This document shows, in pieces, positions 919 to 35,224 of a stretch of 64,000 nucleotides of DNA. The number at the start of each line of letters is the position of its first letter. Positions within the stretch are counted from its first letter, which is position 1. Made by a program: the position numbers and the translations under genes. The notes beneath the pieces were generated by a model. The model was not told the DNA's origin. It did no database searches and saw only the letters and a list, made by a program, of their open reading frames with translations. This DNA is from Trichoplax adhaerens (Eukaryota > Animalia > Placozoa): NCBI RefSeq assembly GCF_000150275.1, contig NW_002060943.1, positions 11,656,878-11,720,877 on the forward strand, written 5' to 3'.

Positions 919-1360
919 CTGATATGTTTAGTACGACAAACTGTGATAGTCTTATGATTTTCAATCTAGCGAATGGTGCAAGAGGCTAGTTGTTAGGTCT
1001 ATAAAATATGCTAGTTTGGTTGTTAGTAGGTTTAAGTTGGTAGATTGGCATTAATATATTGATTCCCTCATAACGATATTGCTCAAAGGGCACAGTCTTT
1101 ATACTAGGATCTCATAAAAATAAATTGATAGTTTTATCACGTAAGAAACCACAAGAACTAATGCTGAAATCAATAAGGTCTACACCAACACACAAAATTT
1201 GACTAGGAACAATCATAGTTAAGCCAGGCATTAAGTTGAAAAGGCTATTGATTGTAATATTGACAGAATAGCTGGTAACTGCTGGAAGGGTATCGCCAGG
1301 CGAAACAAAAAGTTTTGCCTACTTTTGAAGGTATCAATTTCAGTAATTTCCTCATAGGGC
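919..1360 (-). pseudogene. Disabled Spondin_N exon, paralogous to exon 2 of the spondin genes at 24-33 kb
   Basis: Minus-strand translation between AG (1361-1362) and GT (917-918): GPMRKLLKLIPSKVGK/LFVSPGDTLPAVTSYSVNITINSLFNLMPGLTMIVPSQILCVGVDLIDFSISSCGFLRDKTINLFL*DPSIK...IYQLKPTNNQTSIFYRPNN*PLAPFARLKIIRLSQ. It is collinear with the intact spondin exon 2. Lesions: +1 frameshift near 1306-1316, TGA replacing the conserved Trp (1112-1114), TAG (986-988). Confidence 0.9.
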
Positions 1361-8300: not shown

Positions 8301-10793
8301 GGAGATCTTACTAAGCAGAGAATTGAGGATGCATCTCAATGGCTTGATACATTAGAGACAGTAAGATTTCTAAGCTAATTATGTAACCTAATGTATTGTT
8401 ATGACATCACATGATTGAATACCTTAGACTCAAGAAACGCATTCCAAGATTTAAAATGTAAGTATTAACTTCTTTAATCCACAACCTTTTGTATAGATGG
8501 TATTGGAGAAAGAGAAGAAACGGGAAATCAAAAAAGCGAAAAATGAATTTACTAATTTAATTGCATTGGACTTGGATTTATCCTCCAATTTTTATCATGA
8601 TAATGTTAACATTATTCGGGTACATTCGATTCTCCAGCTGTTATAGTTGTTATCTGTGTTATAAATTAATGATATGGATATAATTTATGAGTATATATAT
8701 AATATATATATATAATTCGAAAAGCAGATTACTTTAGATTGGAATGAAATTATAAGCCTAATACTGATAATATAGTTGATGAAGTTCAACTAGATCGAAT
8801 TAATGCCAAACTACCGTATCAATTATACTTTTATTACTCATTTATGACCCGCTGATTTGAACCATTCTATGTTTACCAGGCAACAAAATACGATTTGGAA
8901 GACTTGCTGGATATTGTATTTACTTACAATCTTATGAAGCAAGTCGTCTATGTAATGAAGGACCCTCTTCACATGCTGTATAAGAGTTTAAAGACCGACA
9001 TTGAAGTAAGTAATATCGTTTATCCCTCTTTTATGTCATAACTGTTCAATTGCTAACCTTTTTTTACCTTTAGCCATTACAACATGAAAGTAATACGTTT
9101 AAGATCATTCGAAAGTATGCTGAAAATAGTCGTAATCATCCTTATAGCAACTACTTTAAATTAAAAATCGAGGAGGTATGCTGGTCTGATGCAAATTCTA
9201 TTGCTAATATACTATACTTGTATGGAATTACCCACTTATTACGATTGATATACTTATTTTACGGCATGACGATAAATTTACATATTTACCTCCGCGATCT
9301 TTGACAGTTGCTTTTTGTTATATCGTAGGTATTTAAAATCAATAGACATGATGATGATGAAAAATTTCAAAGCCACTCAAGCTATAGCAATCGAATGTTA
9401 TTGTGGCACGGATCGCGTACAGTTAATTCTGCCAGTTTGCTGTCACGGGGGATGAGATTTTATCCTCCAAAGACATCCTCGGTTAGTACAATGACCATCA
9501 CTTTTACTAAAGACAGACCGATAGTTTTCAATTGTTTTAACATTGGAATATTAAAAAACTATTTTTTAGAAAAGATCCTACATGTATGGTAAAGGAGTTT
9601 ATCTGACAGGTATACTAACTTATGATTAAGTACTGTAATTTAGATCAGATTAGCAATCATCGAAAATTAATGAATTACTTGCTATGATCGCTAATGTTAG
9701 TGCTATGTTCACTATTTCATACTAGATATAATGTGGAAGGTAGGAAACTAACTCATGACTTAAATCGGTTAATTTATCCTGGAAGCGATCTTAACTAGAA
9801 ATGATCAGGATGTGCACAATTAGATAACATGTTCTTATTTTGATGGACCGTAATTTCGGCAGAGTGCCATGCAATGTCAAGCCTCTTTCGCTTACCCTAC
9901 TGGTTTATTGCTATTATGTGAAGTAGCACTTGGCAGCATGTAAGAATATGTTGCAAGCTTGTAGCTTCGGTTATGATCTTTTAAAGTGTTCTTATTTAGT
10001 TATCATCAGTTAGCTTCTCTTTTCCTCTTGTTAATTTATGTAGCTAACAGGATGATTTATCATATATATTGCTGTTTAAATAATTTTATCAAAGATCATA
10101 ACTTGCGGCTTAAAACGCTGTTCAGATTATCTGCATGCATGGCGTTGCAGTAAATATTTCTTTGTAGTATGTTATTATGACAGTTATAATTTCTTATTAA
10201 TAGACATGTATGCTTATGTATTTCGTTATATTGTTATGCTCTTTCTATCAGAAATGTAACCAGATTTTAAATTTGTCTAACTTATTTGGTAGGCATGAAC
10301 TTAAAAATTATAAGGATATGGCTAGACCTGTTTTACCGAAGAACACGCATAGTTTTAAACGTATGAATTAACGATCGTATAATTTGAATGTCTTATTGCT
10401 GTTACGGTATAACGATATATCTGCACAGAAATATGAATTACGTAACGAATGCTGTGATATTAAATAGGTATAGGGGACGTAGCACCTGATCCATCTGGTA
10501 ATCATGTGTTAGAAAATGGAATAATTGTACCTTTAGGAGAGATAAAAGGAGTTGAGACAGGCACCAAATGCAATGAGTATCCTTAATATACTTTATCAAT
10601 TCAAACAGATGATTTTGCTCATTTTTAATCTAGTTTATTATAGAAGTTATTAGTATACAAAGACTGATATAGCTTATTTTAACTTATAATTCCTTAATAT
10701 ATTACAAGATATGTCGTTTATGATGTGCGACAAGTAAGAATTCGGTATATGGTTCAAGTGAAATTTAACTTTACTGACGTATCATTAGACTAA
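2372..10793 (+). CDS. PARP1: PARP1-like poly(ADP-ribose) polymerase paralog A (Zn1-Zn2-Zn3/PADR1-BRCT-WGR-HD-ART), multi-exon
   Basis: Exon 1, 2372-2488: MTESEFSVKAQYSKSNRSICKICHKKIGKGSLRLAL. 3614-3871: WNHCGCFF...DGFATLRLEDQEKI...CTKCQQDI. Zn2: YHPQCF. Zn3: DGMAFGALKCCPVC. BRCT: EEFGGKI...LPVVNESFI. Catalytic: MLLWHGSR (9395), YMYGKGVYLTD, LLLLCEVALG, NE|YVVYDVRQVRIRYMVQVKFNF; TAA at 10791-10793. A Zn1 micro-exon in intron 1 was not located. Confidence 0.92.
10577..10708 (+). other. U12-type (minor spliceosome) GT-AG intron in PARP paralog A
   Basis: 5' site GTATCCTT; branch-point TTCCTTAAT (10690-10698) about 10 nt before the AG; no polypyrimidine tract. It splits the GA|A catalytic Glu codon. 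Confidence 0.9.
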
Positions 10794-13243
10794 GTCTTAA
10801 AATGATTTAACTGAAAGGTTCTTAGTATTTTCGAGTTATTCACAATATGCAAAACTGCATTTATTATATATTTATAAAGTACTAAACACTCTAATTCTGT
10901 TTTAAAAGTAAGAATTAGCAACCCGTAATATTTTGTATTATTTTGAAAGGTGAAAATGTTGACGGTATCGTGTGCATTGTAAATACTACACACAATACAT
11001 GAAAATTTAGCACTATCTAATGTTGCTACCTCAATCCCAAGTATGTGCACTCATATACTTCTAAATGTTATTAAAACATGGCACTGCGAACGTTAATGAT
11101 TGTAAACCGTAAAAATGTTTTCAAAAACTTTACGTCACTACCTGATATTTTCTAATGCAGCCAAGCCAAGATCAATAGTAAATTAAATTTTACAAGAAAT
11201 TGCTTGTAGGTACAGTTTAGAATATCTGATTTAATGATTCATCATGATTCGTCCGTTCAAATTTTGTATCTGAGATTGGTTTAATTTATTGTTTAATTTG
11301 GAATCAAAATAACAAAATGATGTTCTTTACTCGATTGCTGTTGTCTGTCATGTCGTTTATGTTTACTCGAAGTGGGATAATCTGCATTAGATGATTATAA
11401 TTAACTCGTATACATAGGTATGAGTTATGATAATACGTACAACAGTACAAAGAGTAATGTCTAAGTTATTGTTACAAATCTCCTTTGTAACTAGAAAACG
11501 GGTCTTAAACACTATCTTCACTAGTACTCGTGTTCCCAACTAACTTAGGGACCTATCGTAGTTGAACTAACTCTCAGCTACACAAATAAGCTACTAATGA
11601 TTAGTTACGTTAATCTTAGTCGTAAAATGTACTAAAGAAAAACGTAAGAATATTCTTAGCAGTAATAATCAAGTGATCCTGCAAGTGACGGAATGGAACT
11701 GAGCAGCTAAGCTAGTGCTCGGCTTTTTATAGTCTCGGCCTACGCCGATGGTGCACTGGTGAATATTCTTGACATAGCGACTTACACTGTACAGTATACA
11801 TATCCTAGTATACGAATTCAGTTATAAGAAGTTAACATAGATCGGTATAAGTCAACGCTAATTAACATTAAATGAATTAATGAGCCAACTAGAGCCTCAA
11901 GGCTCTGCAACGTAATTGCACCTTACACTTAAGGTGTTATCAATTGACGTTTACTGACTAAGCGTGTTAGCTCCGACACGTCAACAATATTGAACTTTCT
12001 GATGCCTTGGTAATAACAAGTACTTATTAATAAACATGAATATCTAATAAGCTACTGGAGCAAACAACAATATATAAATGAGATATTATAATTAACATAG
12101 CAATCAATATTTCGAAGCATGGCTCCGTAACAGTTATTAACAAGGATGCAAAACCTGAAATGTACTTGAGCGGAAAATAAAGTCAGTTACGTTAGACTAC
12201 TTAAGTGTTGAGCATTAGATCATACACTTATTAGCGGTACTATCGACCTAACAAGTGCTATTGGTAATTAGCGTCGGCTTTTCCAAAAAAACATGTGTGC
12301 AAGCACTTAAAACGGATATTGCTAAAGCTACGCATTTTTGGCGTTTCTGTATAGCGTGCACTTCATTATGACATGAATACATTGCGAAATATTTATTGTT
12401 TTGTAATTTTACAAGTAGAAGTCTTAAGCAACAAAATCGCTGCAACTCTTGATAAAAAAGAATGGAGCATTAATTAAATCGTGTACATTTGTCTCAATGA
12501 ACAAAGAAAGTTACAGAATTTTTAATCCGTAATGTATTGCCTAAAAGGAAGGTTCGTGACAAAGAAAGATAATACAGCTATATAGGATCATCATCCTAAT
12601 ATTACCGATTAAGATCTTGCTATAGTTGCACGGGTTAAAGTTATAAAATCAAAGTATGAAGTCTTGCACTTCTCAGGAGAATAGTTTTTAGATATAATAC
12701 CTCTAATATCTTTCTAACAACAAGTTTGCTGCAAGTAGAAAAATTTAAGAATAGCTCAGTTCTGATCTTGGTGTAATATGTAATCTATTTGTTTTATGTA
12801 AAGAAGAGAATAAACTAATTAATTTGTATGATATTTTAGTCTTGCAATGATACAGATAACATTTCGTACCGTTGAAACTGTTTAAACACTTTTCAGAACT
12901 GTGCTTTAACTATAAAAATAAAGCCTTAATACGGTAACTCTCTGAGTGTCCTAAGAACTAACACCGTGAACAGAAGTCATATTCCCAAAATAAAAGGATC
13001 AAATCACTTAACAGAGAATTTTTGATTTAGTTGTTGCCAACTTCGTAATTTTCAGTATACAAGTATTATAATGTAATAATATTTAGTTCCAAATGATCAC
13101 GGCTAAGAATTAAATCCGAAGTTCTTTCAAAATTATTACATATTTCTATTTAGCAACTTTTTTATAGTGTTGTTTGTTACGTAACAGTTGACATAGGTAA
13201 TTATGATATATTAAATAAGTAATAAAGAATCTAGCATTAAATA

Positions 13244-16200
13244 CTAATGAAACAGGTCATTCCTGAAATTAGCTTTCGCTTTCACCAAGTACCTAATCTG
13301 CAATTGTCTCGTATCATAGACGACATAGCTGAGATAATTGTTAAGTCTCAATAGATATCATTTTCTAAATTAGTATATAGTGCTATCGTAGAATACACAT
13401 AGAAAATAGAGAAGAGATGTATAAAGATACTCATTTGCACCCGATCCATTATTGTCTTTTGTCATTTTTCCTAAAGGTACAACAGTGCCATTCTCGAGAG
13501 TAAATTTTTCTGATGGGTTCGGTATAAATTCGCCCGGACCTATATCATTTCGAAGTACACAAAGTAAATTGACTTTTTTTAATGTTTATACTATACTAGC
13601 GCAGGATGCAATGCTGAGCCACATAATAGATCCAGTAGTCGCACACATGAAATTAATTACTACAATACATTTAAAGCTATTAGCCGTTGCTGGCATTTTG
13701 GGCATTTCATGGCAGTCTGGAAATCTCATTTCATATCTGTTGTAATATAGAAAAGAGTCGTAATTAAGGGTAAATATGTATTACAAGTAAGGTAGATTCC
13801 TTTATTTATCACTAAATATTGCCATATAATACATTTTGCCAAGAGCTACTTCGCAAAGACACATAATGATAGTTGGATTAGTCATTGTTGGTTCACACCG
13901 CTCCGCACACTAAAACGTAGCAAATGCTATTATTAGTAGATATTAGATCAAAGTGATAAAAAGGAAACTAGCAATGTATATTTGGCCATTATCGTCCTAC
14001 CATAGATGCTGAATCTATAATTGATAAGAAGATAATGTCAGTAACATGAGTAAAGAATATGACGTTCGTGAGTTATAATCTAATCGGATTTATTATATCT
14101 TACCAGTGAAGTACACCCCTTTACCGTAGATGTAACTCCTATCCTATCAACAATAATAATTGTATAGCCTCATTATCACAGCACACTTAGAACACAGTGC
14201 TCATTGATTGCTTCAAGGGGAAAGGATCAGTTTATCATAACCAGTGATTATGGATAATACTTACTAAACACGTTTTAGGAGGTGTAAAACGAACGCCCTT
14301 AGATAACATACTAGCATAGCTAGTAAATCGAGTTTGATACCAGAGCAACATCCGATTATTGAAATTTGAAAAGTGCTGATACTGTTTATCTTCTCCATAT
14401 CTTTCAACTTTAAATACCTATGATCAGAAGGTATCTAAGTATAAATTTCTAAAACATTGTTTAGAATATTTGTTAAATGACATTAAAATGTGTGAAATAC
14501 AACTTGTATAAACAAATTAATTGATAAATGGTTAAATTTAAGTCATAATTTAGTCAGTAACCTCTTCAACAGTTAACCAGAAATAATTATGAATTGACAA
14601 ATGGCTATTTTCAGCATAATTCTTTACCATGCCAAATTCTTCACTATTGCTATAAAGATACTACAAAATTTTCATATTTTAGATCATAATTTCATATCAT
14701 AATATTCGTTATTAAAGAAAATTTCTAAAAGATATCTGTACCGTAATTTCGGTCTTTAAGGACTTATACAATGTATCCATAGGATTTTGGCCATCACTAT
14801 TTGCTCTTCTAATTATGTCATAACTAGTAATGATATCCATGAGATCGTCTAGCATGAATTCTTTATCCTAGTAAAAATTAATAAATTGCAAATTAAGTAA
14901 ACTATTCTTGTTGCACTTGATTAAGAAATATATACTAAATTTTATACAACAACCAGAATCAGAATATAACTGGTACGTCTATAAGGTAGACGTAGGAGAA
15001 ATAGGTGCGGTGCATTCATTACTTAATGCAATAAAATATTTAGTTGTAGTTACCTCTAGTTCATATAAATTGTTTATTGTTTCTGGGTCATCTATTCCGA
15101 AATTATGGGGAATTACGGCATAAAATCTATTCACTTGCTCCAAAATTTCTTTTTTATTCTTGCGTTTTGATATAAGCTGTTAGGTCATACGATTTTTTTA
15201 GTATCAAATGATAAAGGCAAGTAGTATATGGACATTGTCAATTTAGTACTCTGTATCCATGGATATAATAAATAATGAAAATATTACGATATTATACTGA
15301 CATTTTGCAACATAGATAGACATTGAGAAGCGTCATTAATTTGGTTCTCAGATAGATCAGCAAGTTTGATTGCCTCCAGGTCAACCTAAGGATTGTATTA
15401 TCTACGAGTTACCTTATGAATAATTAAAATTAATATAGTCACGATTTACTTAAATATCATTGGAATTTGTTACAAATATCGCACCCTGAATTCCAGCAGA
15501 GTATTTTTCATAGCTTGAACATCGAAAATCAGCTTAAGGAGATTTCTTATATGTCGAAACACTTTGCTACCTTTATCTGTAAAGATTAAGTCTACTTGTC
15601 TTCCTTCTTCGTCCTGCATTAACGGTTTGGAAACGAAGGGATTGCTTGTGAGTGAATCTCTACCTACGTGATATAACAACCTCTATACTTACTTTTTCGA
15701 CGTCTAGATAGACAGGATAAAATTTTCGAGCCATCTTAACAAATTTCTTTTCTTTTCCAAATCCATTACCTATACGATAAAGAATTAATATTACTAATAT
15801 CGAACATTATATTTCAGTGATAGTGTTTTCGAGTTCGATAATTAGAAAAAATAAAACTGATATTAATTAGTACCGGTTTTCTCGAAATACATTTGATCAA
15901 ATATTAGCATGGCTTCTTCTTTTGAATACCCAGTCTGTTAATAAATAGAAAAATTTCAATAGTATAATAGCTTATGGTTATATCAGTAATGAGATGAACT
16001 CTGCGTATTCTTTCTATTACTCAATGTCGCCTAACCCATAGGAACAAATAACATTATAATCTTACTTCGACACTGGTTTCTCCTTTCTTACTGTTGACGT
16101 CACCCCATGCATGAAAAATACAGCACCTAGTTTGTCATTATTAATTACAATCAACTAGAATAATAAAACCAAAAATACCTACAATCCAGTTTATTCAGAA

Positions 16201-19200
16201 AAATAGCTTACAGGTTCGTGGTGTTACTCTGCAATGCTTGTATTTTACAATAACTATGATGTCTGTATCCGTTTTCTAGATTTACGCTATAAACTGAACC
16301 ATCTGGCTCCTTAATGACGTGATGTGTATCTAGCAGACCTATTGGATATTATAAAATTTAAAAATTATTAATGTTATGGTAAATATTATAAACCCTTCTG
16401 ACCAAGATTTTATTCTCAGGTCAACAAAACTAGTAGGTATTATGCGTTGATAGTGACAGATATAATGCTACTTCTACACGAAACTATAAAATTGCTCCTA
16501 CCTGATCGATAATCAACAGCAACAGATTCGTTTGAAGTGGTTTTATTTTCAGTTGTTCTTCCTACAAATTTTAAAAGAAAGAAATAGTTCGATATTTTGT
16601 CTTAAAATTATCACATTAGTATCTATAGTCTAAGCCTGCAATACTATAATAAGTGTAAAATTTGGGGTCCAAAATCAAGTATAACCTGACTGTATTTCAT
16701 CAGAATTTGCAGGGGAGGTCGACATGAAAACTCTTTCACGCACTACACTTCTATATTCTCTTCTATTTAAGCAATTAGTCATCGATGGTGGCAATCCCGT
16801 AAAAGCACATATCCAATATTGCATTAAATATAATGTAGGGGTTTGAAATAAAATAGTTATAATTCGATGATAGAGGTAACCGTAGTGTAATTCATAAATT
16901 GATAAAAATAGAACTAGAATTTCTGAATTATAATTGACAATATATCATATGTGCATGTCACTGAACGTACAAATATTTCGATTTCTCACAGAGTTCGTCA
17001 GGAATTTTCCATTGGGTCCTGCTTGGGTTTTGAGTTAAACTATGACACCTGAGACAACGATAGCCATGATCTACTCGGCTGATGACAATCAACATAATTA
17101 AAATGCATGACTTTCAAGATACAAATAAAAAACTTTAAAGTGTTATTATTAGTACATGCTGTATTATAACTATTGTAATCCCGAACATTATCACTCCTTA
17201 ATAAAGCAAGATCATCCATACAAAAATAAAAATGCGAGTTACTTACAGAATGTTTGTATCTATACTAACCTAAAAAACAATATGCCACTGCACTCTTTAC
17301 AAGGGTTTAATGCACCAAATGCCATACCATCAACAACTAAATGAAATCCCTAAAATTAAAGGTATTATGCATTAATAATGAGGTATAAGACACAAAATAA
17401 AATAGAAAAATAACTGTAACTATATGCTTTAAATTGAGTTAAGTATTGTTTATCTACGTACCCTAGTATCGGCTACCAATTTTTGATTATTATATATTAG
17501 TAGATCCTTCAACATTTGATTATTACATTCTTTTCTCAGGTTGTCATATATACTCCATAACCCTACAGTTTGCTCCTGCAGCCAGTAATTATAATTTATT
17601 GGATTATATGGCCAGCACATTTAAACGAAGTGAATCATTTTTAATTATCTAAATATAATGCAATTTATAACGTGTACGTTACGAAATATAACAATTTTAC
17701 GTTCGATCATACCCTTAATTTCATTATTTTGGCCATATTCTCGTCACTTTTGCCTCTTTTATTCGCTATGTCTGTATCTATGTCTTTGCTTTTTCTTTTT
17801 CCTGTATCTTCTTTATTTCTATATTATTAATAAACGATTTAGTAATGTTATCAAACGTTAGTTGAGGCATCCATTAGAAACAAGGGAAACTTTTTGCCTA
17901 TCAATCGTATTTAAATTTCATTTATATTGCTCTTACAAATCTAAATTTGTAACGAGAAACAGTTGAAAACTATTATAGAAATTGCAAAATTATGAGTCTA
18001 CTGTCAGGTTTGTCCACCCTAACATTAACCTACTGTACAGTGTACAGTAAGACTCTAAATACTAACGATCTCCTATCGTCAGGATGAACAGTAATACAAC
18101 ACTAGTCTCTAGACATAACTGAACCCAAACTTTAATAAAAAGTCAGTCAATTTATAGTAAATTGATATAAACATTAATTATCAGTTTGTAATTATATAAT
18201 ATCATAAAACTGTGCAGTTATCTATTAAAAATATGTAAAACATCACAAATAACGGTATGTAAACACATTTCTAGATAAATTATCTTATGGAGTCTACTGT
18301 ACAGTATGTTACGAGAGGTTAAACTGATTAGTAAGATAGATAATCAAATCTTACATCGCTGAATTCGATGATCCTTCTGAAGGAATTTCGTGAGCCTGCG
18401 CTGAAGAGGTGGACGTTTTCGAATATCCCTGATTTTGAGTTGTGGGATCAATTCGATTTCTAATTTTCTCTTGATCTTCTGGCCGCAAGGAATTAAAGCC
18501 ATCAATATCGCCCTCGTTGGAAATATTCTTTTTTCTGAAAAAACAGCTGTAATGATACCATTTTGCTACCTAAGATCAAGGGTGTTTAATCAGTCAGATT
18601 TTGTAGTACTTTCAATGCTTGCATATGTATGCATTAATCCGATAATACATCAAATTAGAAATATCTAAGCAGGGCATCATGATTCATACACACAGGATAA
18701 AATACAGAATAAATTCTAGCTATTTTAATAAAATTGATGATTTTTCAAATTGGAATTATGTACCAATGTGTTAGTATTCTAGTAACTAATTTGTTGAAAT
18801 AATCTACCAACGCTGCACAAGCCTATTATATTAGACTTATATTACAGCAAATAACTTAACATTAATTGTGCACTATCGATTACAATTCTTATAAAATAAA
18901 TGTGACAATAGTAGACCTTACCTTCGCATCGTCAACATACCAAGACTAGACGAATAAAATATAAAATCAATCTGTTAAATAACCTTATAAAACACGTCAG
19001 TTTAAATATGTATCTCCCAAATAAGTAAATATATATACATAGACGACGAAAATTTCGAGAGATCAGCTGTTTAATGCGTCATACTGCAGCTAAATTTATA
19101 CATGCATGTTAATCGGTTGAAATATTATAAAATGTTACCTAATTTACTATAGTAGCAATTTAATACCTTCTTAATCTTTGTACTGTAGCTGTAAATAAGA

Positions 19201-19668
19201 TTAGGTGGGCGCTATGTTTATCGTTTAGCATTGCTTGTATTCGAATTAAGATCATGATTAAAATCAAGATGTACGCGTAGTCATACTGTAAGATATAATG
19301 AGATTAACTATAGTTTGCATTTCCGCTAATTAATCTATCCTAAATCGATATGGCCATAATGCAGATAGTATACCAGTATTTTAGATAATTCGGGTGGCTA
19401 TTACACGATATTCTATTGTAACTTGCAAAAATAATCAATAGCTTAGAAATTGTTAACATTTTAATTTTAGCACGTTCATTTCACATGAATGCACATGTTA
19501 AGCCTTTGTATGAAGTTTCTATTAATAAGAAAATAATTGACAACTTACAGAAAGCATAGCTGCTATCCTTAAAGAATTTTTACCAATATTTTTTTTACAC
19601 GCATTACAAAGTGAACGTTTCGATTTTGCATATTCTGCTTTGAACGGCAAGACATCAGTATCGGTCAT
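13244..19668 (-). CDS. PARP1: PARP1-like paralog B (Zn1-Zn3-WGR-HD-ART; no Zn2 or BRCT; predicted catalytically impaired), multi-exon
   Basis: Exon 1, 19668-19549: MTDTDVLPFKAEYAKSKRSLCNACKKNIGKNSLRIAAMLS. 24-nt exon 18945-18922: SWYVDDAK. Then WYHYSCFF...DGFNSLRPEDQEKI; DGMAFGALNPCKEC; AVDYRSG; NRFYAVIPHNFG; RMLLWYQTR; YIYGKGVYFTD; LCEVALG; ND|YVVYDTRQLQIRYLVK; TAG at 13246-13244. No stops in the exons I translated. Confidence 0.92.
13329..13430 (-). other. Degenerate U12-type intron in PARP paralog B
   Basis: Same position as the U12 intron of paralog A. 5' site GTATCTTT; branch-like GACTTAAC about 11 nt before the AG; splits GA|C. Confidence 0.65.
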
Positions 19669-21825
19669 CTTGTATTTCTATTAAGATATTAAAAAGTAAA
19701 AATGATGATAAACGATTAGAAACGAACCACGGTACAATTTTACTGCATGATACAATAATAACTGTACTGTATGTACAGTACAATAACGTCGTCGAATAGG
19801 CAATCCATTATATCATTATTATTATTAAAGTTTATTAAGATTAAACAGTATCTAGTTTACCCAGTTAAAATTACATGTGGTTATACTGTAACTCATTAAC
19901 AATATAAAATAATGTAATCGATATTCGATCTCAACATATTTATGCCCAGTCAAACGATTCACTTTCGACTACAGATTTAATAATGCTACTGTTGTACGTT
20001 TACTACTTAGTAGCAAGTGTCTTTATTTATTTTAAACAATGTATATCAATTTTTCAATCTGTATTTGTACAGTAGACGACGAGTGGAGTAATTAATTTAG
20101 AGAATAGTTTATTTAAGGAGCTTCCTGGCCTAGTTCTATCGATTTCAAATTGATGATTGCCTCATTGTCTTTGAGATGATCAAATAGAAGGTATCAGCCA
20201 ATCAATCGTCATTTGTAGCGTAGTTTGAAATTGAGTATGTGGAGATGATTTATAGTATGGTTAGAGACGATAGATAAAGTAGCAAGTAGAAAAATCGAGT
20301 ATACTGTTGTGACCAGCCTAATAAATGTACTTTGCTGTATTATTGCAATATGGTGTACAGCATGGGCTGTAAGCTTATGTAGAGAATGTATAAAGAGGAT
20401 TACGTTTCAAAACTATGCCCGTGTTAGTATAACGAAGTTTATGCAGTAACGTATGTGATGAAGCAGCTAGTAGCCTGATACTGTATGCATTAACACAGCA
20501 ATGGGAACATTATTCCAGGCATCAGTGGTATGTGATAATTTAGTTACAGTTTATAGTGGTGACTGCAAAGTTAGAATTAGAAATAAAGCATAATTTGGCA
20601 ATTGTTGCCATTGGTGGTTGCAGACAAAACCTGTACATGATACGTGGTATACTTGTTATGTGTGCACTTCTACAGTAGATCAACAACGACTAAAAAATGA
20701 ATTATAGAACTAGTTAGTGTCATAGAGCTATTGATTTCTCTTTAATAAAGGCAATCAATTTCACTGTCCAATGCAATACAGAATGACTTGTCCCATCTTT
20801 GATCGACTTTTCTTGCATAGCATAAAGCAGACAGCAATATGAATTAATTTGCTATCATCGCTCTAGCGCTGATAGCAAAACTAATTGATCACTTCTAATT
20901 ATTGCTCATTCAACTCGATATTAGTAGACTACCAGCATAAGAGAGAATCAACATTGAATACCAGCGATTCAACTAATTATAACCAACTTGCAAACTAGGA
21001 AGACTGACAAATCGACCATGGTTGAATAGTGTACATGATTCGTACATTACAACAAAACTAAGGTAGTACCCTTGTAGTACACTAGTACAGCATGGTTGAA
21101 ACGTCCATTGAAATGTCATTTTTGAATCATTATGCTATCTTGCCGGTCTGATACCAAAACATAGAGAAATAAAAGATAAAATCCTTGTACAAATTCTTTA
21201 AAGCCTTACAATCCTACTTCAATCCATCTCCATTAGCAATGCTACGCTTAAATCACTTACATGGATAATGACTAATCTGCAAGTATCCAAAGGAAGAAGA
21301 AATAAGGCAATGAAAACTCGTTCGTCTCTGTCAAAGAAACGATGAGCTATGTGCACCTTTGAAGTTGATTTCGTCAGTCCAGAACGGGTCAACCTGGCAA
21401 TGGTATGACTGGTATGGCAGGTCAATGACTAAAAAAAGATCGTCGTTCATTAGAACAATATCATTATTGTCATAGTGATTATTATTATTTCTTAATGATG
21501 TCACGCATGGCATATAAAAAACTACTTGACAAATGAGAGGCAAGCACTCACCCCTCGTAAGCTCTGGCTACAAGTACAGGTACAGGAAGGAGTTTACAGT
21601 AGTAGGGTTAAGAGGCGAGACTAGCGAAGATTAGGCCACCCTGAAAGCAGGGACTTATTGAAAAGAGAGAGAGAAAAGAAGCGGCCGCTCACTGCAAAAT
21701 AAGATGGCACATATCATTTTTCGAGTTATTGTACTATACGCTCCCACTGAAATCGTCGACAGTATTACACTGACAAAAGCGATCAAGCAACTGGATGACA
21801 ATCGAGTTGCAACGGTGAGCAAATA

Positions 21826-21940
21826 CAGTACAGTACTAGTGTAGTGTACAGTGTACAGTGTACAGTCTGTAGCCTGTTTACAGTAACAGTACTGTACCGT
21901 AAACATGGTTTTGGGCTCGTGCCTTGATTGTTACTGTACC
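21826..21940. repeat. TACAG/TGTAC(AG)-rich array upstream of PARP paralog B
   Basis: cagtacagtactagtgtagtgtacagtgtacagtgtacag...cagtactgtacc, adjacent to a GC-richer promoter-like segment (~21540-21820). Confidence 0.75.
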
Positions 21941-22002
21941 GACATTGATTGGTCAATGCTACAGTATACGCTATCACGCCATTGACAGGGCATTGACACG
22001 CC

Positions 22003-22500
22003 AGCTGCACGTTGATCGTCATGCAAAAGCTTTTTCTTTCGTTTTATGCCTAAGGCATCATGCTTGCTGCAGCCATGGTCATTAATTAATTATAATCATG
22101 ACGGAAACTTCCTTCTCAATACTTGTAGCTGCACGTCGATCGTCATGTAAAGCTTTTTCTTTCGTTTTATGCCTAATGCATCATGCTTGCTGCAGCCATG
22201 GTCATTAATTAATCATTAATCATGACGGAAACTTCACTCTCAATACTTGTAGCTGCACGTCGATCGTCATGTGAAGCTTTTTTTTTCGTTTTATGCCTAA
22301 TGCATCATACTTGCTGCAGCCATGGTCATTAATTAATCATTAATCATGACGGAAACTTCCTTCTCAATACTTGTAGCTGCACGCCGATCGTCATGCAAAG
22401 CTTTTTCTTTCGTTTTATGCCTAACGCATCATGCTTGCTGCAGCCATAGTCATTAATTAATTATAATGATTATGGAAACTTCTTTCTCAAAAGTTGGAGC
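22003..22500. repeat. Tandem repeat, 124-bp unit x4
   Basis: Units starting agctgcacg... at 22003, 22127, 22251 and 22375, with few substitutions. Confidence 0.97.
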
Positions 22501-24194: not shown

Positions 24195-25833
24195 CTACTG
24201 TAGGAGATGCAAATTTATAGTCAGGATGATGCCCACTACCAAAGATGCAATAAGTACCGGCATAGATTGAAATGAGCCACCACTTGCTCCATTTGTGACA
24301 ACTACAGTTGCGTTGACAAAGAATACAATTAGTAAATTTAACATATGTAATCAGTTAGTTAAAGCGGGAATATAATGATCGAGTTAGCTATTGCGAGGGT
24401 ATTCGAGTGTTTAAAACTAAATAGGAATACGTATATCGTACTGTATGTGTTCATCTATTGCTATGCCCTTATCCCTACCTGTAGTATTAGCTGTTCAAGC
24501 CATATCGTATATTGTCGAATAGTCAGCGGAGTTGATGTATATAGAGAAATTGAAATATAGCATACTTTAGATTAGTTGCAAGTATACTAGCTGTAATGAA
24601 TTTTTCTAGCATAGAAAACTATTGTATCATCTGAATACTTTAAAGATTTTATAATGTCTGTACTCATTTGATAGTTTAATTAAAACAACTATTAAAATGA
24701 AACAGACATTTTCAGTATTGTAAGTTGGTTACTTTAATATTAAAAAATATCTATGACACTAGTTGGAGAAATTCAGATAAGATTAGCTAGTAGTCAATAA
24801 TAGGATCCCATTTTGTTTACGAATATAAGATTAACCATTCTTTAATCTAGCAATCTTAAATATAGTCTATTATTGTTCAAATTACTATTGGTATGTTTGT
24901 AAATTATGATTTAGTAAGGCAGTGGAAAATTTAAAAATCTATAACGTTATGCAATGAATGAATACTTACGTGGGCTTAATAAATTTTGTGATACTCTCGT
25001 TAATTGTAATCTGGCATAAGGTAACAAAGATTGACCGTTAGCTCGGTAGAAAACACTTGCTGATTGATTAGACGTCTTTATTTGATAGATTGGCACTCTT
25101 GTCAATGAACCGGTATAGCTATATTGTTCAGTGGCGGCCGCTTTCGTACCAGCATCCCACAGATATAGATCAATAGTCTTGCTAGCAATAAAACCACAAG
25201 AACTAGTACAAAAATTCACTCGATCTACACCAACGCACCAATCTGGACTTGGAGCAATCATTGTTAACGCAGATAATAAGTTAAAATTATTATCAACGTT
25301 AACAGTCACTGAATATGTTGCAGTTGGTTGGAGAGATGATCCAGTGGACACAAAGACTTGCTTAACATTATTTGTCATGGGCTCTAGTAGAGCTTTTAAA
25401 GGCACTTTATTTTAACATAATAAACTCCTCATTAGTATCTTGAAATAGAGAATATCTTGGAATAAAATATGATAACCTAACAACACTTACTATGTAGGAT
25501 AATAGCGCACATTAAGAATACGCTAAAATTTTTGCATAGGATCACTAGATCGTTACCTGCATTTCCATTTTCAGCTACGGATTTAACCTGAGTCGATGCA
25601 TATTGTCCGTAAGCATAAACAGTTACTGCTGGGGAATGTATAGCGCCAATCAATGGCGACCAATGTGGAAAATTAGTTGGATAATTAGGATAGTTATTAT
25701 TGTTAGCCCATAGTCCAGTAAAAACAACAGTGTAAGTAGCACTACCAGAGGTGCAACACGACGTTGAGGAAGCTCCCAAGGTTCTTGTGATTATCAAACT
25801 CAGAAGAATAGTTATCAAAGTATACTTGCACAT
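24195..25833 (-). CDS. Secreted, predicted GPI-anchored Spondin_N (F-spondin/mindin N-terminal) domain protein, single domain
   Basis: Signal peptide MCKYTLITILLSLIITRTLG. Exon 25833-25557: ATYTVVFTGLW...PHWSPLIGAIH...VKSVAENG. Exon 25404-24970: LSALTMIAPSPDWCVGV...LYLWDAGT. 12-nt exon 24490-24479. Last exon: VVTNGASGGSFQSMPVLIASLVVGIILTINLHLLQ*. Additional micro-exons are possible. Confidence 0.88.
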
Positions 25834-28800
25834 TTTTTAATCACTTATGTTCTGGGTATTTCAGATTTGCTAGCCCTATTAAATTAAGAAGTAAGTTAAA
25901 GCTAGATAATAATAGTCATAATTCGTTTAATCATTAATATAGCTTTAAGGAGAACTGTGTGTATCAAGCACACGAATACACATTCTGATGATTCTTTTCA
26001 ACAAAAAGTCTCCAGACTTTGATCAAACTATTAAATAGAAAAAGTTGATCCATTCAAAGATGAAGCTAGAATCAAAATATATCCTTTACAAGATAAACCG
26101 TGATTGTAGTTGTTGCGGCACTGTTAATTACATCAATCGAGACATACAGTACGCTATGCTAGCCATTAACTTAGCAGCCATTAGTAAATTACCATGCTTT
26201 GTACAGTAATAAATGCTACTATTAGTGCTTAACATACGCGTATAGTCTTTAAAGTGTGTAAGAACTATCGATCCACAATGTACACGAATATTGTAAGTCT
26301 ATACGAACGCAAATTTTTTCCCTACAATCGCGTTTACTGTACTTCCTAGACTAGGATCTGGCAACGTGATACTAATATGGCATATTTATATGAAGTTACC
26401 GGCAGTTTCCGAAATTAAGCATTTTACAAAATCGTTAATCCCTTCGGTATATACAAGTACAGTGCGAGTCTTTCTTTCTTCAAATTAAGTCATTTCAAAC
26501 TATTAACTAAAACGGTTTTCACAATTGAATCGTGGTTTATACCCTTCTGAGGTGCAATTCAGTAAAGGGTTATCTGGTTTAATTGAAGTTGGAAACATTG
26601 ACGCGATTAATAATTTAGAACATATTTAAGCGTTCCATTTAAGCCAATAAAATTTTCCCTTGATATCGGTCAAGTAACGACGCTTTAGATGATAAGCTAG
26701 CTTTAAACTGTAGATTACGAACCTTTCTTTACTGTACGCTCTATTTATTTAGACGATAATCTCGAGACTTTATAAGTGTAGTGCAAGCAGCTCGCTAGTT
26801 AGAAAATGATTTAGATTGTAAATTATGGGTCCTCAATTAACTTCCATTTACGTAATAGTTGAGCAATAATGTCGTCGTTGATGATTTCGACACTTTATAA
26901 GTACAATACAAGCAGTTTCAATGATATAATGTCATATATCTAAATTTGATCATGCATTGTACTAGTATAGATACGTAATTCCCATTTTAACGATATGTTC
27001 ATATAAAGAATTTTTAATATGACATGACGTTGCAGTTAACAAAAATTCTCGTTTAAGGAATAATATGCCAGAATGTTGCACCATTGATTAGCGATAATCA
27101 AGTTAAAATAAAATTGCTATTATTCGCGTTCTCATCAATTATCTAATCTAAATACTTCTAAACGTGTGCCTGTACGCTAGTAAAGTAATTATACATAATT
27201 CATTCTAAGGATGAGTTATGAATCCATTGATGAAATTAATAATGGAAACAGGCCATTTCCGTTCAATTCCTTACAGCTAATCATAGTTGATATTCGTAAT
27301 CTGTAGCTAAATATTACGCTAATATCTTATTATCGAAATGAAATATTCGTACGTGACTGTCACGTTCAAAGGCTTGACAATGGGCTCTAGTTTGAAAATG
27401 TGTGCGTGATCCTTTTAGAGATTTTACTGCGACAATAAATATTTTTTAAATACTATTAGCATCTCGAATGCTATACGAATACGCGCATAAACTTGGATCA
27501 TTCTAAGTGCAGACTTATTTTAAAGGCATCTCCAGGGTGATTTGAAATATATTTGAAAGATTCTACATTAACACCACAAGATTGTTTTGATACAGATCTA
27601 TAAAAAGCAATTCTAAATATATCTCAAATACTTTAACCTTCGCCATGTTGTAATTTATATACTTATTGCTAACTTACCTTTCGTATTCTAGTACGGAAAA
27701 AAGGTAGATGAACTAGATATAATACAATCCTATCACCTGAACTGAAGCTGTAAAAAATGAATTAATTGACAAGAATTGTTTATTATATATGATATTGACT
27801 TATTGTTCTATATCATATTAATAATGCAAATAAATAAAAGTTCATTGATACATAAATAGTACTATAGTATAGACTGGTTTCTAAGCTGAACGGTATAATG
27901 TTTTCCGTTAACAGGAGGTACCTGGTACAGTTTAGTACTATTCATCCTACAGTACGTACAGTATAAGGATTTATTGTATTCGCCTAGTTGGAATAATTAT
28001 TTTTATTCTTTAATTATTGTACTATAATTGTATGGAGTATTTAATATGAATGATCTTGTTATGCTTACTATATATGTTATTTGATACGGTACTAATAGAC
28101 TTTAGTCACCGTTCAAAGATATTGAGATATTTATTGACGCGTGAATAATTGCATAAGATTTCTGCTTGTAGTTAATAGTAAATTGATAATCTGGCGATTA
28201 ACTAGCATGGGATAGTGCATTTTAATAAATCTTAATCATTTAGGATGTATAGTATTTATGAATGCATTTTATAAAATGCACCGGTAGTAATTAGAAACTT
28301 ACCGGAAGATAGTAATCAGCAATTCTTTATTATCTACTTCAGGTTTTGTTAAAAAAGAATTACGCTTACAGTACTGTGTTTAAAGCCGGGGAAGGCATCG
28401 TAGGTGATTTCGATCAAGAAAATACTTCTATTATGAGTATCGATAATTGTTAGCAAGCTTGTTCGCTCGTAATATAATAAATGATAGTACGAGCATTGCA
28501 CAACGTTTATCATTTCTTGAATGTAAAATGTTGTTGATCGGCTTATTTCATTCTCTTCCTCTTTCTGTATATATCTTAATCTGTCATCTAGCATGTTAAA
28601 ATTGTAGATGGCTATTGGAAATACTATCGTGGTTAATTTTGAATTGCAATTTAGTCGAGTGAGATATACCAGTAGCTGAGCTAATTTTACACTCTCATAG
28701 GAAACTCCGTCAACAAATTTAACCTTTTATTCTCTATGTATCCCTTCGAGCCTATTAAGTACTAAACAATTTCATTTTTGGAGCTTGCTAAGTAAAGATT

Positions 28801-29702: not shown

Positions 29703-32700
29703 TTAAGTGGAAGTAAGAAATTTAGCTACATTTGCAATAACCAAGGCAAAGAAGATCAAGGCAATTGATCGCGAAGGACCGGCCATGGCATCATTAATTC
29801 GACCTATCATAGAAATTATAGCGTTAAATTAAATTCTAATGACGCTAATATGCCGGCAACATTAAAACTGTTTAACAAGATCTCCAAAGACTAGCATAAC
29901 TCTTATGTTTTGATGGGAAATAGTTTTTCTTATTATGACCGTTTATATTGCGTATCAATTGATACTTAAAGTAATTACCTGTAGTTTGCAATCATTTCGG
30001 TAACGATCGGTAGCAAGATAATATGAACGATTAATAAAAATGTTAGTGTAACAGTATAATAGATTAACAATATCAGTTTTAATGTAGCAAAGTAATAAGT
30101 ATGTCTATGCTTTATTCCTTATAAAGTCACTACACTTCAAAAACTTGATAATAATTACCTGTAGTAGGTTTAACTGCATGGTAGGTGATCAAAATTATAA
30201 CAAATTTAGTTAGTAATTCGTAACAACAAGACGATCCGAAGGAATTTAATATTTAATGGCAAGCGTTTACTATCAAGCAATTATTCGAAGTATAGCTTCA
30301 AATTAATTCTATGCTTAATTACTATACATTACCTGTTGTCGCTGTGGGTACTGATAGCAGGAATTAAATATGAAATTAAAAGATTATTAACATATTCGGA
30401 TTGATAGGCGATTACAATAGTAAAGTTAATTTAAAGATTCTGAGATAATTTGATAACAAATATCTTCGATCAATGATTGATCTGAACATAGCTTGAAATT
30501 AAATTTATATTAACTACATTACCTCTAGTCGTTGTAGGTTCTGATAGCCCCAATTAAACATGAAATAAAAAATTGTTAGCATTTATGGCTTAATCAACGA
30601 TTATAATAGTAAAATTAATTTAAAAATTCTGCTTTTAATATTCGACGGCAAGTGTTTTCCATCAAATGATTATTTTGAGTATAGGTTGAAATTACTTTTA
30701 TATTAAATACGTTACCTGTTGCTGCTGTGGGCGTTGATGGCAATAATTAGATATGAAATTAAAATAAAATGATTGTTAGCATTTTTGGATTATTTACCAA
30801 TTGAAAAAGTAAGATCGATGTTGAATCAGTAAATAAATAAAAGTCGAAATTTTGCTTGAATGACGATATGAAGTTTTTAAGTCAAGGTATCTTGACAAAG
30901 CTTGAACTCTGATACATATTGAAGATTTCAGACATATTTGAGTATTATGCTATCGATTGTAGAAATACCTTGAGTTGTTCCTGATGGAAATGAAACAAAG
31001 AAATAAAAGACAATTGTTAAAATTTAGAAAGTTATTAAAAGTCATCGAATATATCTGTACATTAAATCACTGATACTTATGTTATTATCTGTCTACAATA
31101 TCGCGAACCTAGCGTGCCGAGTGAACCTAGCGTGCCAAGTGAAAGCAACCTGATATGCAACTTTGCAAAAGGTGGCAAGGAAGTGCCGTTAGCTCGATAA
31201 AATACACTTGATGAATCGTTAGTTGATTTGAGTTGATAAATCGTTCTATTAGTTGCGCTACCGGCGTAGGTATATTGTTCTGTAGGTCCGGCTTTGGTAC
31301 CAGCATCCCATAAATACAAATCCAAAGTAGTGTTGCCTATGAATCCGCACTGTTTGGTACAGAAGTTTACACGACTTACGCCAACACACCAATCTGGACT
31401 AGGAGCAATCATCGTTAAAGCAGATAGTAGATTAAAATTTTTATTAACATCAACGGTGACAGTATATTTTGCGGTTGGTCCAAGATATGCACCAGGAGAG
31501 ACGAAAACTTTTTTAACTTTGTCAGTCATAGGCGTTAACAAATTTTTTAATGGACCTATAGAGCAAAACAAATAATATCGGTATACGAGGATTATTATCT
31601 CAGCTTAATTTCTCTAATTCACCGCAAAAATTAATAATTGATTACTTTAAGGTTATGCTAGCGTTGTCGTAATGTCTAGTACAGACTGTATCTGTATAAT
31701 TTTATCTATTTTCAAACTTACCTGCGTTACCAGCTTCAGCAACAGATTCTACTTCAGGTGATGCATATTGACCATATGAATACACGGTTAGAGCTGGAGA
31801 GTGGATAGCTCCAATAAAAGTAGACCAATGAGGAAAGTTAGAGGGATAGAAGGGGTAAGCGGAACTGTTAACCCAGATTCCTTCGAAGGTTAACTCGTAA
31901 GTAGCACTACCTGCGCTACAGCAAGTTGCATCATCTATTTTGAATAGATATAACGATGTATTCGCAATAAGATTATTATTTATCGTTAATTACACCGATA
32001 ATAAATAACTATAGAATAGCAAAGAATATAAACTAATTTAAAATAGTAAATATTTCAATTAAACCACAGTATCAAGCTACCGTACTGAACTTTAAAAAGG
32101 AAACAATTTCATATTAATTAATTAGTGAATTTACTTTGAATAGGTGTGATTGATATTGTTAATACGTAAATGCAAGAGTCCTTGATACGAGCGTTATTAG
32201 TTAAAAATTTAAAATAATTGTCGCTATTAGATTAACATTTTAATCAAAAAGCATGCGGATGATCATAATAGCGATGCTTTGAAATATTTATTATCGTACT
32301 TGAAGCTATATTTTGTGATAATCTCTCGATGTGTAACTTAGCATAAGGTGGCAAGGAACCGCCGTTAGCTCGATAAAATACGCTTGATGAATCGTTAGTT
32401 GATTTGAGTTGATAGATCGTTCTATTGGTAGTACTGCCGGTGTAGGTGTACTGTTCAGCAGCTCCGGCCTTAGTGCCAGCATCCCATAAATATAAATCCA
32501 TAGTCGTGTTGCCTATAAATCCACACTGTTTGGTACAGAAGTTTAAACGACTTACACCGACACACCAATCTGGACTAGGAGCAATCATCGTTAAAGCAGA
32601 TAATAGGTTAAAGTTATTGTCAACGTCAACAGTGACAGAATATTTTGCAGTTGGCCCAAGAGATCCACCAGGCGAGACGAAGACTTTTTTAACTTTACTT

Positions 32701-33140
32701 GTCATGGGCGTTAATAAATTTTTCAATGGCTCTATTAGAACGAGGTAGATTACGTGTGCAAAAATTAGCATCATTACAGCTCTATAATTATGAGTAATTA
32801 TCTGGAGTAAATCCATCAGTAATATATGTCGAATTATTTTAATTTTATTTTTATTCTTACGAGCTTGACCAGCTTCAGCAACGGATTTAACTTGAGACGA
32901 TGCATATTTTCCATATTCATATACCGTTACAGCTGGGGAATGGATAGCTCCAATGAAAGGAGACCAATGGGGAAAGTTAGTCGGATAGTAAGGGTATGAA
33001 GCAGTGTTGGTCCAGATTCCTTCGAAAGTTATCCGATAGGTAGCGCTTCCAACAGTGCAACAACTTGCATCATTAGCCGCCAAAGTAGATGCAAAAATGA
33101 TGCATAGCAGTGCAAAAATGGCAGAAGAATGAGTAGTCAT
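29703..33140 (-). CDS. Predicted GPI-anchored protein with two tandem Spondin_N domains and a Thr/Pro micro-exon stalk
   Basis: Signal peptide at 33140. Exons 33140-32861 and 32731-32300 form domain 1; 31934-31722 and 31555-~31109/31127 form domain 2 (no ATG or signal, phase-1 acceptor). Micro-exons at 30980-30969, 30540-30523, 30350-30333 and 30173-30159. Last exon 29803-29703: GRINDAMAGPSRSIALIFFALVIANVAKFLTST*. Confidence 0.85.
30245..30800. repeat. ~190-bp diverged tandem unit (intron + 18-nt micro-exon) x3
   Basis: Parallel sequences: ttacctgttgtcgctgtgggtactgatag...atatgaaattaaaa (30329); ttacctctagtcgttgtaggttctgatag...catgaaataaaa (30519); ttacctgttgctgctgtgggcgttgatgg...atatgaaattaaaa (30712). 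Confidence 0.85.
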
Positions 33141-35224
33141 CTTGACAGAAATAAGAGTCTGAAACGGATAATGAAAGAACTATCAGCAATAAAGGATGGA
33201 AATAATTTTGTATATTTCCATCTTTGTGTAATAGAGCTACTATGATATGACGTATCTCTTTAACATTTGCAGTAAGATATTTTAGTGAGAATTACGAGCA
33301 GAATGATGAAAGTAAAAATTACGCGGTTTATTTCGCATTTAAATTGTATTAACAAACATAGGAAAAATTTTTTAATTAATGATATTCGTACTCTTTTCGT
33401 TAGAATTACCATGAGAAATTTAAGTCTATTTTTTAGTATAGCAATCATCTAACTGTATATAATTTTGCTTTCATTTTAGCAACAAGTTGGCTATATTTTA
33501 CTAACGGGTATCGATAGATAGATATATCGTAATTTCACTTACCAATCTTTAGAATCGATGTACTGCAACGTCAAAGCAAGTGTTAATGACTCTGCAATTA
33601 TGCTGCAACCTTCTGATTAACAGGCTATATGTACCGTATATCTTGACTGTATCAGTATATTCATGTAATCTTAACCGTATTCAAGAATAGAAATTATAGC
33701 ATAATTGAATAGGAATGCAAAGGTGATGGGTTCGTACCTGGTATAATAAGGTACAGTGCAATGGTCGTCATAATGATGTTTGCATTTATACAATTGCATA
33801 TTATTTTAATAAGGCAATTATTTAATAAGGGCATATTAAGAATATAATAAATGTCTTTTATACAATATAGTGAGTGTACAGTAATTGTAGTTTAGTAGTT
33901 ACAAAAGCAATTCTCCTCATTGGCACAATAGGGTCACATTTTAAAAAAGACTATGGTAAAATTTTTCAAGCAGTTACGACGAATAAAAATTGCGATATCT
34001 TCGAGTAATACGAAAGCAACTCTATAATAATGTTTGAGTTCATTATGTAAAATGAGTACGTACTGAACCATTCATTACACATCTCTAATTACAGCTATTA
34101 AATAAAGTGAATCACGTACGTATTGACAAACAAGTACTTTTAGAGAGCTTATTGCTATATTTTGCCTGTACTACATGATTGAATAAAAATTTAGTGTGAT
34201 GGTGATAATTTTGTGGTAACGTATGAACAAGAACCACTAGAATTTAATTAGGTGCATTAAAGCTCAATATATATAATCAGCTTCAGCAATAGAATACAAT
34301 TCAGAGAAACATTTACAACACTTTAATTAGCTCATTGCTTAATAATATAATCCGTGCACGTTTAGACTTTCTATGAAGGCTCTTAGGAGACCAAACCTTA
34401 AAGAATACGTCGCGTTAAAAATATTTAAAATACATTACAGTTATTAAATAATCCATTATTCAATATTTTACTAAGAATGGCGTGATTATGTCAAAAGTAG
34501 CATCCTCTAATTCAGCTTGGCCTAAGAAGCTCATTACTATCTTCAATTTAATTTTTTTATGCTGTTTTAACTTTATATACTTATTATTGTAATCTGATAT
34601 ACAATATAGACGTGTATTATTATTATAATTTATAATATAATGCCAAGCCATTACGTATGATGCTGTTAAATATTGTTCTTTCTTACCCTAATTGTACGTA
34701 AAGAAGATCATCTTAATTCTAGTATTTAGGCCATCCTCATACCTACATATGAAACTATTAGATACTAACTGAAAGTATTTATGAATATGGACAGAATATA
34801 CTAAGGCGAAATTTTTATATAATGCCCGGTCAACTTACACATTGTCTAAAGTGGCGACCATTGTATATATATGTATGTATTAACATATGCATTGCTAGAT
34901 TTTTTCATTACCATTAACATGGAAGTAATGTACATGTTGGTCAGCAACATGTCGAATTGTCGATGCGTAACAATTGCAATTGATTAAAGAGTAAATATAC
35001 GTTGATGTTTCCGTTCGTAGTCATGGATATTAGAATGAACATGAGTCATTCAATGGCATAAATTGTAGTATACTAGAAATTTAAGACTAATTGGCGATAA
35101 ACTATATCTATATAAAAATGATATGTCCATTTCTGTGATACCGGTAGAACGGGAACGGTAATTGTATTCGTATTCTGATTAGCTACTGTAACCGTATGTA
35201 ATTTAGTCTGTCACATTATGGCAA

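Follow-up and report, generated by a model that had tools for sequence, protein, structure and literature searches.

Poly(ADP-ribose) polymerases (PARPs) that have lost catalysis, termed pseudo-PARPs, are known in the PARP13, PARP9, TASOR and plant RCD1 lines, and the PARP1 line is regarded as almost uniformly carrying the catalytic triad H-Y-E. Here, we examine paralog B, a PARP1-derived gene of the placozoan Trichoplax adhaerens (lineage H1), which lies on the minus strand at 13244–19896 of a 64,000-nucleotide stretch of scaffold_1 (contig NW_002060943.1, positions 11,656,878 to 11,720,877 of the forward strand), hereafter called the window. With Zn1, WGR and the helical regulatory domain (HD) arranged around a pocket for nicotinamide adenine dinucleotide (NAD+) that appears dead, B is probably a maintained, non-catalytic derivative of PARP1, a predicted pseudo-enzyme and not a dying gene, and would add a pseudo-PARP built on a PARP1 scaffold.

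Among Clade 1 PARPs, H-Y-E is kept in almost all members and is altered solely in land-plant Clade 1D (Citarelli et al. 2010). These plant proteins (PARP3-like) resemble B in their Clade 1 membership, in combining WGR with HD and in having an altered triad (Cys-Val-Glu). They keep the Glu and lose the His and Tyr, whereas B keeps the Tyr and loses the His and Glu, and the triad loss in B arose inside Placozoa, independently of Clade 1D. PARP13 (ZAP) is treated in the literature as non-catalytic, and Karlberg and colleagues reportedly described it as inactive in 2015; its triad reads Y-Y-V. As in B, the His of the triad has become Tyr, its middle Tyr remains and the ADP-ribosyltransferase (ART) fold is without NAD+ contacts. 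Unlike B, PARP13 belongs to the clade with CCCH zinc fingers and WWE (Clade 3), has Val where B has Asp, and possesses no HD, WGR or PARP zinc fingers; in B, Pfam recognizes PARP1-type domains only, with no CCCH and WWE ahead of the ART domain. The parallel to PARP13 drawn in the original prediction thus holds for the His-to-Tyr residue and is limited beyond it, as clade, domains and third triad position differ: the likeness is convergent, and B is no member of the PARP13 family. A further comparison is the pseudo-PARP domain of TASOR in the HUSH complex, which has a PARP fold without catalytic residues, as in B, and serves assembly or targeting (PMC7532188). TASOR differs from B in its unrelated architecture and far greater divergence, and nothing links B to transposon silencing.

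Measured against vertebrate PARP1 and the canonical Trichoplax PARP1, B shares the order Zn1, PADR1, WGR, HD and ART, the intron positions and the predicted fold (template-modelling score, TM, of about 0.9). It differs from them in being without Zn2 and the BRCT/automodification region, in a truncated Zn3 ribbon, in reading WGD at the WGR motif, in its Y-Y-D triad and in the replacement of G863, S904, Y907 and K903 (human PARP1 numbering).

The NAD+ pocket of paralog B

The WHGSR motif of PARP1 is replaced in B by WYQTR (H862Y, G863Q, S864T) at 14328–14342 on the minus strand, precisely as originally predicted, and the phmmer alignment places it ungapped on WHGSR of the human and chicken PARP1 chains. 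Two other predicted changes, KSANYC to MCAERC and NEY to NDY, were borne out as well, each spanning an intron. In the former (K903M, S904C, N906E, Y907R; 13895–14003, minus strand), the M codon (14003–14001) forms the end of a 14-nt micro-exon, intron 22 intervenes and CAERC follows at 13909–13895; in the latter, the catalytic Glu gives way to Asp (E988D) through a codon GA|C split by the last intron (13432–13431 plus 13328, minus strand), at which the neighbouring paralog A reads GA|A (Glu). The triad Tyr Y896 is kept (14111–14113, minus strand) inside GKGVYFTD, and this motif with its GKG, together with CEVALG, VVPLG (predicted as VPLG) and YVVYD, is retained as had been claimed. Over 352 residues colinear with human and chicken PARP1 (E 1e-80, 37–43% identity), further substitutions comprise N868S, M890I and Y986A.

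In PARP1, the nicotinamide amide is anchored by G863, which contributes two hydrogen bonds from its backbone, and by S904; Y907 is part of the lining of the nicotinamide pocket, and H862, Y896 and E988 form the triad (PMC8931346). B has therefore lost both the triad His and the nicotinamide anchors (H862Y, G863Q, S904C, Y907R), which is the mark of a pseudo-PARP, and its triad is Y-Y-D in place of H-Y-E. Among 205 related PARP catalytic domains retrieved in the analysis, WHGSR occurs in 194 and WYGSR in one, and a residue other than Gly at 863 in none. The lone WYGSR sequence, with its triad His changed to Tyr, is a PARP2-like isoform X2 of Papaver somniferum (P0185).

These substitutions are set in a catalytic region whose fold is predicted to persist. 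AlphaFold2, run on residues 430–793 of P0151, the orthologous protein of Trichoplax sp. H2, with a 44-row alignment, returned a mean predicted local distance difference test (pLDDT) of 90.3 and a predicted TM score of 0.89 for the HD-ART region, with the D-loop region alone below 50. The top Foldseek matches of this model are human PARP1 catalytic domains (TM 0.89–0.93, root-mean-square deviation 2.4–2.6 Å), in line with the folded domain that the original prediction had proposed to check by structure prediction. Pfam, phmmer and the combination of AlphaFold2 and Foldseek agree on an ART fold preceded by an HD, as in Clade 1, and the HD+ART fold is thus predicted to be retained.

To ask whether the pocket was hit PREFERENTIALLY, we used the 99 HD+ART alignment columns with a conservation of at least 90% across 19 canonical animal PARP1s. 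Of these, 58 are kept in B, next to 61 in A, 55 in D and 56 in G3 (paralogs described below). Thirteen of 18 donor-site positions, on a list of our own based on PARP1 structures, are changed in B, against 35% of the other columns (one-sided Fisher p 0.004). The named contacts (PMC8931346 list) are changed in five of six cases, against 35–39% of other columns (one-sided Fisher p 0.043). The same test detects no pocket-biased loss in A, and the HD retains 15 of its 21 conserved positions in B compared with 7–12 in the other paralogs. The losses of B at conserved positions are thus unevenly placed and focused on the pocket beyond chance. The original prediction had spoken of a systematically rewritten pocket; the changes are real, and a release of constraint confined to the pocket describes them better.

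It is unlikely that B retains ADP-ribosyltransferase activity of an altered kind, for instance as a weak mono-transferase or an enzyme using another donor or acceptor through Tyr/Tyr/Asp, as the His, the Gly-Ser pair anchoring the nicotinamide amide, Y907 and K903 are jointly gone and none of the 205 relatives departs from Gly at 863. PARP13, the sole human PARP with Tyr in place of the His, is regarded as inactive. In favor of residual transferase activity, B retains Y896, GKG, the ART core strands and the HD, the last of these being a known gate of NAD+ access and unusually well kept (15/21), and Asp could in principle substitute for Glu.

Gene model and domain architecture

The window is AT-rich (~32% GC) spliced eukaryotic DNA. 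A phmmer search with the WYQTR exon identifies B as TRIADDRAFT_52698 / B3RJW2, a 749-aa database protein at 98% identity. The gene model derives from P0151 (793 aa, annotated ‘PARP1’), which was mapped exactly on its own H2 locus (L013) as 26 exons; these were carried to the window by gap-free alignment, the H2 locus and window positions 3253–29448 being 99.3% identical, and an independent spliced aligner reproduced the identical 26 exons. B accordingly comprises 26 coding exons with 793 codons plus a stop, all introns are GT-AG, and no stop or indel occurs across the exons in either H1 or H2. Exons 15–19 (14562–15613) encode the HD (PARP_reg in Pfam), and spliced alignment assigns the ART domain to exons 20–26 (13244–14417), namely 14417–14265, 14143–14104, 14014–14001, 13909–13833, 13736–13669, 13539–13431 and 13328–13244 including the stop, all on the minus strand. 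The end of exon 24 (13669) joins the start of exon 25 (13539) to give ..SFKC|PGEF.., matching P0151.

The model of the Joint Genome Institute (JGI), P0001, is faulty at its 3′ end, where four ART exons are missing and a splice leads into an unrelated open reading frame (ORF) at 12251–12448. That ORF, 65 codons on the minus strand within the 2.5 kb that separate A from B, serves as the last exon of B in the JGI model. Consistent with this fault, the sequence 52698_Triad, ending in ..GKGVYFT, is among 46 incomplete sequences excluded from the alignment of Citarelli et al. 2010 (Additional file 2); B was thus left out of the main family survey as ‘incomplete’, half of the catalytic domain being absent from the JGI model. 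Neither the locus tag TRIADDRAFT_52698 nor a placozoan pseudo-PARP1 is mentioned in searchable papers, so the sequence of B is already public and its dead-pocket feature is undescribed in those papers.

The faulty JGI 3′ end might suggest that the substitutions themselves are sequencing, assembly or annotation artefacts, a notion that carries a negligible probability. The mis-annotation drops exons and creates no substitutions, and every pocket residue is identical in the Sanger assembly of H1 and the independent Illumina assembly of H2, which refutes the assembly errors that the original prediction had named as a possible undoing of its claim. The H2 gene models come from an evidence-based MAKER annotation using transcript assemblies (PMC6057997), and the 14-nt micro-exon of B is included in that annotation, an indirect hint that B may be expressed.

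The H1 protein of B differs from P0151 at six residues, and P0151 stood in for it in the Pfam, fold and database searches. Pfam reports one zf-PARP, PADR1_N, WGR, PARP_reg (3.8e-29) and PARP (2.4e-43) in P0151, and no second zf-PARP, Zn_ribbon_PADR1 or BRCT. In the full-length alignment, the Cys/His ligands of Zn1 are present, Zn2 and BRCT are missing as whole modules, so that B falls short of the full PARP1 module set, the Zn3 ribbon is shortened with loss of the loop bearing its conserved Trp, and the WGR motif reads WGD. In human PARP1, the Zn3-loop Trp and the WGR Arg couple the binding of DNA breaks to HD unfolding. The loss of both residues fits a protein that would have no need to switch on catalysis, and without the Zn3 Trp loop, and with WGD in place of WGR, B may no longer be subject to DNA-break allostery.

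Frame integrity and constraint

The HD+ART exons of B measure 129/84/123/126/99/153/40/14/77/68/109 nt. Those of A are the same except for one exon of 102, and those of canonical PARP1 are near-identical; the shared intron positions and exon sizes, down to the 14-nt micro-exon, indicate that B is a DNA-level duplicate of PARP1. The ART exons of A and B are free of indels at ~55% amino-acid divergence, and all 26 exons and 50 splice sites of B are intact in two independent assemblies, upholding the intact frame of the original prediction.

Such an intact frame is difficult to reconcile with prolonged neutral drift. Stops arise from 4.5% of random substitutions in the B coding sequence, and in neutral simulations, which scored stops alone and left indels and splice sites uncounted, the frame remained open in 0.7% of runs at 10% amino-acid divergence and in 0.025% at 20%. 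B alone has lost 15 of 73 conserved positions that are otherwise kept (~20%), and this degree of loss, together with the 0.025% of frames left open, argues that the pocket was not lost in a neutral phase that spared the frame by luck. The analysis thus supports the view that constraint has probably held the frame open.

A comparison of the H1 and H2 lineages, which are 99.1% identical genome-wide with a mean synonymous divergence (dS) of 0.024 (PMC6057997), adds weak direct evidence for selection on B. It yields six nonsynonymous and seven synonymous differences in B (pN/pS 0.21, binomial p 0.007) and two and four, respectively, in A (pN/pS 0.12). Regarding the selection invoked in the original prediction, the open frame points to constraint, and the H1/H2 comparison contributes little directly. 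As for the proposed check of WYQ in orthologues, the motif is identical in H2, which is near-identical to H1, and the searches described below found no orthologues elsewhere.

We consider it decidedly unlikely that B is an unprocessed pseudogene, or an already functionless gene whose frame has so far escaped a hit. Stops, frameshifts and broken splice sites, by which a pseudogene is recognized, are absent from 793 codons and 25 introns in both assemblies, the ART exon lengths match those of A exactly, and the chance of an open frame under the needed neutral divergence is ~3e-4 with indels ignored. Moreover, the substitutions cluster in the pocket instead of spreading evenly, pN/pS is 0.21, and the evidence-based H2 annotation models even the micro-exon. 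What speaks for functionlessness is the branch of B, ~10–18 times as long as that of canonical PARP1 according to whether the shared stem is included, the loss of Zn2, BRCT and the allosteric residues, and a pN that is not significantly under noncoding divergence.

Several observations weigh against regarding B as a maintained pseudo-enzyme. On the side of lost catalysis, Y896 is kept, the change of E to D is conservative, and the donor-site list used above is our own. On the side of maintenance, the H1/H2 comparison comprises 13 substitutions in total, and pN in B (0.31%) is set against a local noncoding divergence of 0.61% with p 0.12. Searches with P0001, the ART piece and P0151:430-793 found no orthologues of B beyond Trichoplax H1/H2; the best match outside these in word-index searches has 42% identity, and exon 20 retrieved paralog B plus ordinary PARPs from a set of 1.84 billion representatives. 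Finally, a viral PARP with Asp has been considered possibly active (Perina et al.).

A placozoan family of PARP1 paralogs

PARP, zf-PARP, WGR and PARP_reg profiles were searched against the whole 105.6-Mb assembly, followed by modelling of loci, and five paralogs were modelled (A, B, D, G1 and G3). The single canonical Trichoplax PARP1 (JGI 19562) lies on the same scaffold ~200 kb away and keeps WHGSR, KSANYC and YNEY. A maximum-likelihood (ML) tree of the HD+ART region unites it with the paralogs in one clade, canonical PARP1 + (B,(A,(D,(G1,G3)))). This clade, supported at 100/99, sits inside the animal PARP1s, and B accordingly falls within Clade 1. Tree, Pfam domains and the colinear 352-residue alignment jointly bear out the PARP1 scaffold of the original prediction. 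The canonical branch measures 0.084 substitutions per site, that of B 0.92 beyond a stem common to the paralogs and drawn at 0.59, and the longest, of paralog D, 1.41. The paralogs thus form a placozoan (Trichoplax)-specific, fast-evolving PARP1-derived clade, in which B is no one-off.

Paralog A (JGI model P0026; 1902–10775, plus strand, 5′ end approximate) contains Zn1, Zn2, PADR1, BRCT, HD and ART. It lies tail-to-tail with B at a distance of 2.5 kb, and an all-against-all comparison of stop-free pieces aligned fourteen exon pairs of the two genes at 36–67% identity. The C-terminal part of A (9329–10775, plus strand) keeps H-Y-E and reads KSAMQC (N906M, Y907Q) and KCNEY, having lost L984, L985 and Y986; A, the presumed ‘enzyme’ of the pair, is therefore also without canonical nicotinamide and acceptor-site residues. 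The JGI model P0026 is mis-spliced, skipping three ART exons and reading into an intron.

Paralog D (JGI 60629; L016, L017; C1399:~1366700-1376500) carries WHGFR, ESASRC and SSRY (E988R), giving the triad H-Y-R. A cluster on C1389 has four catalytic-domain matches (557967, 570453, 615387 and 625958; L010, L011, L020 and L021), two of which were modelled: G1, with WLGNR, E988K and the triad L-Y-K, and G3 (JGI 61730), with WNGNR, E988Q and the triad N-Y-Q, both possessing PADR1, BRCT, HD and ART.

The sister paralogs A, D, G1 and G3 share with B the clade, fast evolution and the loss of six residues (N906, Y907, L984, L985, Y986 and A898) found in all five, A included, so the nicotinamide and acceptor sites had probably started to erode in the ancestor that the five share. 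B alone has G863 changed, S904 replaced by Cys, and BRCT and Zn2 lacking, and its HD is the best kept. The triad His, Glu or both are lost in four of the five modelled paralogs. At least two losses of the His are needed, one in B and one in G1/G3. The Glu is altered in B, and D, G1 and G3 each carry a different replacement for it, amounting to at least two independent changes. This pattern is the signature of catalytic constraint lifted from a fold that is still constrained, and does not resemble a directed rewrite. The set thereby documents repeated independent triad loss following a single burst of duplication in an early-branching animal.

The arrangement of A and B could also be taken to mean that B is a dedicated regulatory partner of its neighbor, in an enzyme and pseudo-enzyme pair, as A keeps H-Y-E and the same tail-to-tail order 2.5 kb apart is found in Trichoplax sp. 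H2. This is very unlikely. Adjacency is expected from a local inverted duplication, the conserved synteny is weightless given the 99.3% identity of H1 and H2 in this region, B branches off first among the paralogs and is not the sister of A, and A is itself without Y907 and N906.

Additional PARP loci emerged from the same search. An intronless ORF of 582 aa (L003; C1409:5147243-5150818, minus strand) encodes PARP_reg and PARP behind a basic N-terminal region, with WFCTH replacing WHGS. and GNAY replacing YNEY; this Clade-1-type PARP without His, Gly and Glu may be a retrocopy. The PARP_reg loci on C1391 were rejected as family members, being PARP4-like. They comprise two PARP4-like (vault PARP) genes ~40 kb apart (L018 and L019; C1391:420000-469499), in agreement with the PARP4 duplication noted by Perina et al. 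2014.

Proposed origin and role of paralog B

Taken as a maintained pseudo-enzyme, B would be a predicted functional, protein-coding descendant of placozoan PARP1. Given the contacts lost, productive binding of NAD+ and synthesis of ADP-ribose would both have ceased in B, while its fold and open frame would have been kept for another job of the protein. Release of catalytic constraint may have begun in the ancestor of all paralogs and gone furthest in B. More speculatively, B might act as a DNA- or chromatin-binding scaffold or regulator without catalysis, in which Zn1, the remaining PADR1 and WGR could bind nucleic acid and the dead HD-ART could serve as an interaction or ligand-reading module.

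By analogy with other pseudo-PARPs, PARP1 may have given rise in placozoans to a small family of fast-evolving, non-catalytic sensors of nucleic acid or damage (B, D and the C1389 cluster), derived from the sensor of DNA breaks itself and used in genome defence or in a manner resembling innate immunity, independently of PARP13 and TASOR and with B as the most complete pseudo-enzyme; we offer this tentatively and regard it as unlikely. B could represent a natural separation-of-function allele, able to reveal roles of the PARP1 scaffold without catalysis, such as DNA-end binding, trapping-like behavior and HD-mediated interactions. The practical gain is modest: the gene models of two Trichoplax PARPs are corrected, and a set of proteins to express is defined.

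Other features of the window

Window positions 21900–22500 hold a tandem array of at least four copies of ~124-bp units, with 87–95% amino-acid identity and open frames on both strands. The ~124-bp array is present in H2 too, where blastn finds its copies ~91–93% identical. A family of paralogous ORFs, 44–81% identical to one another, occupies 24950–25836, 31080–31989, 32247–33179 (minus strand) and 989–1318 (minus strand), and the H2 counterpart of the ORF at 24950–25836 matches Spond_N (PF06468).

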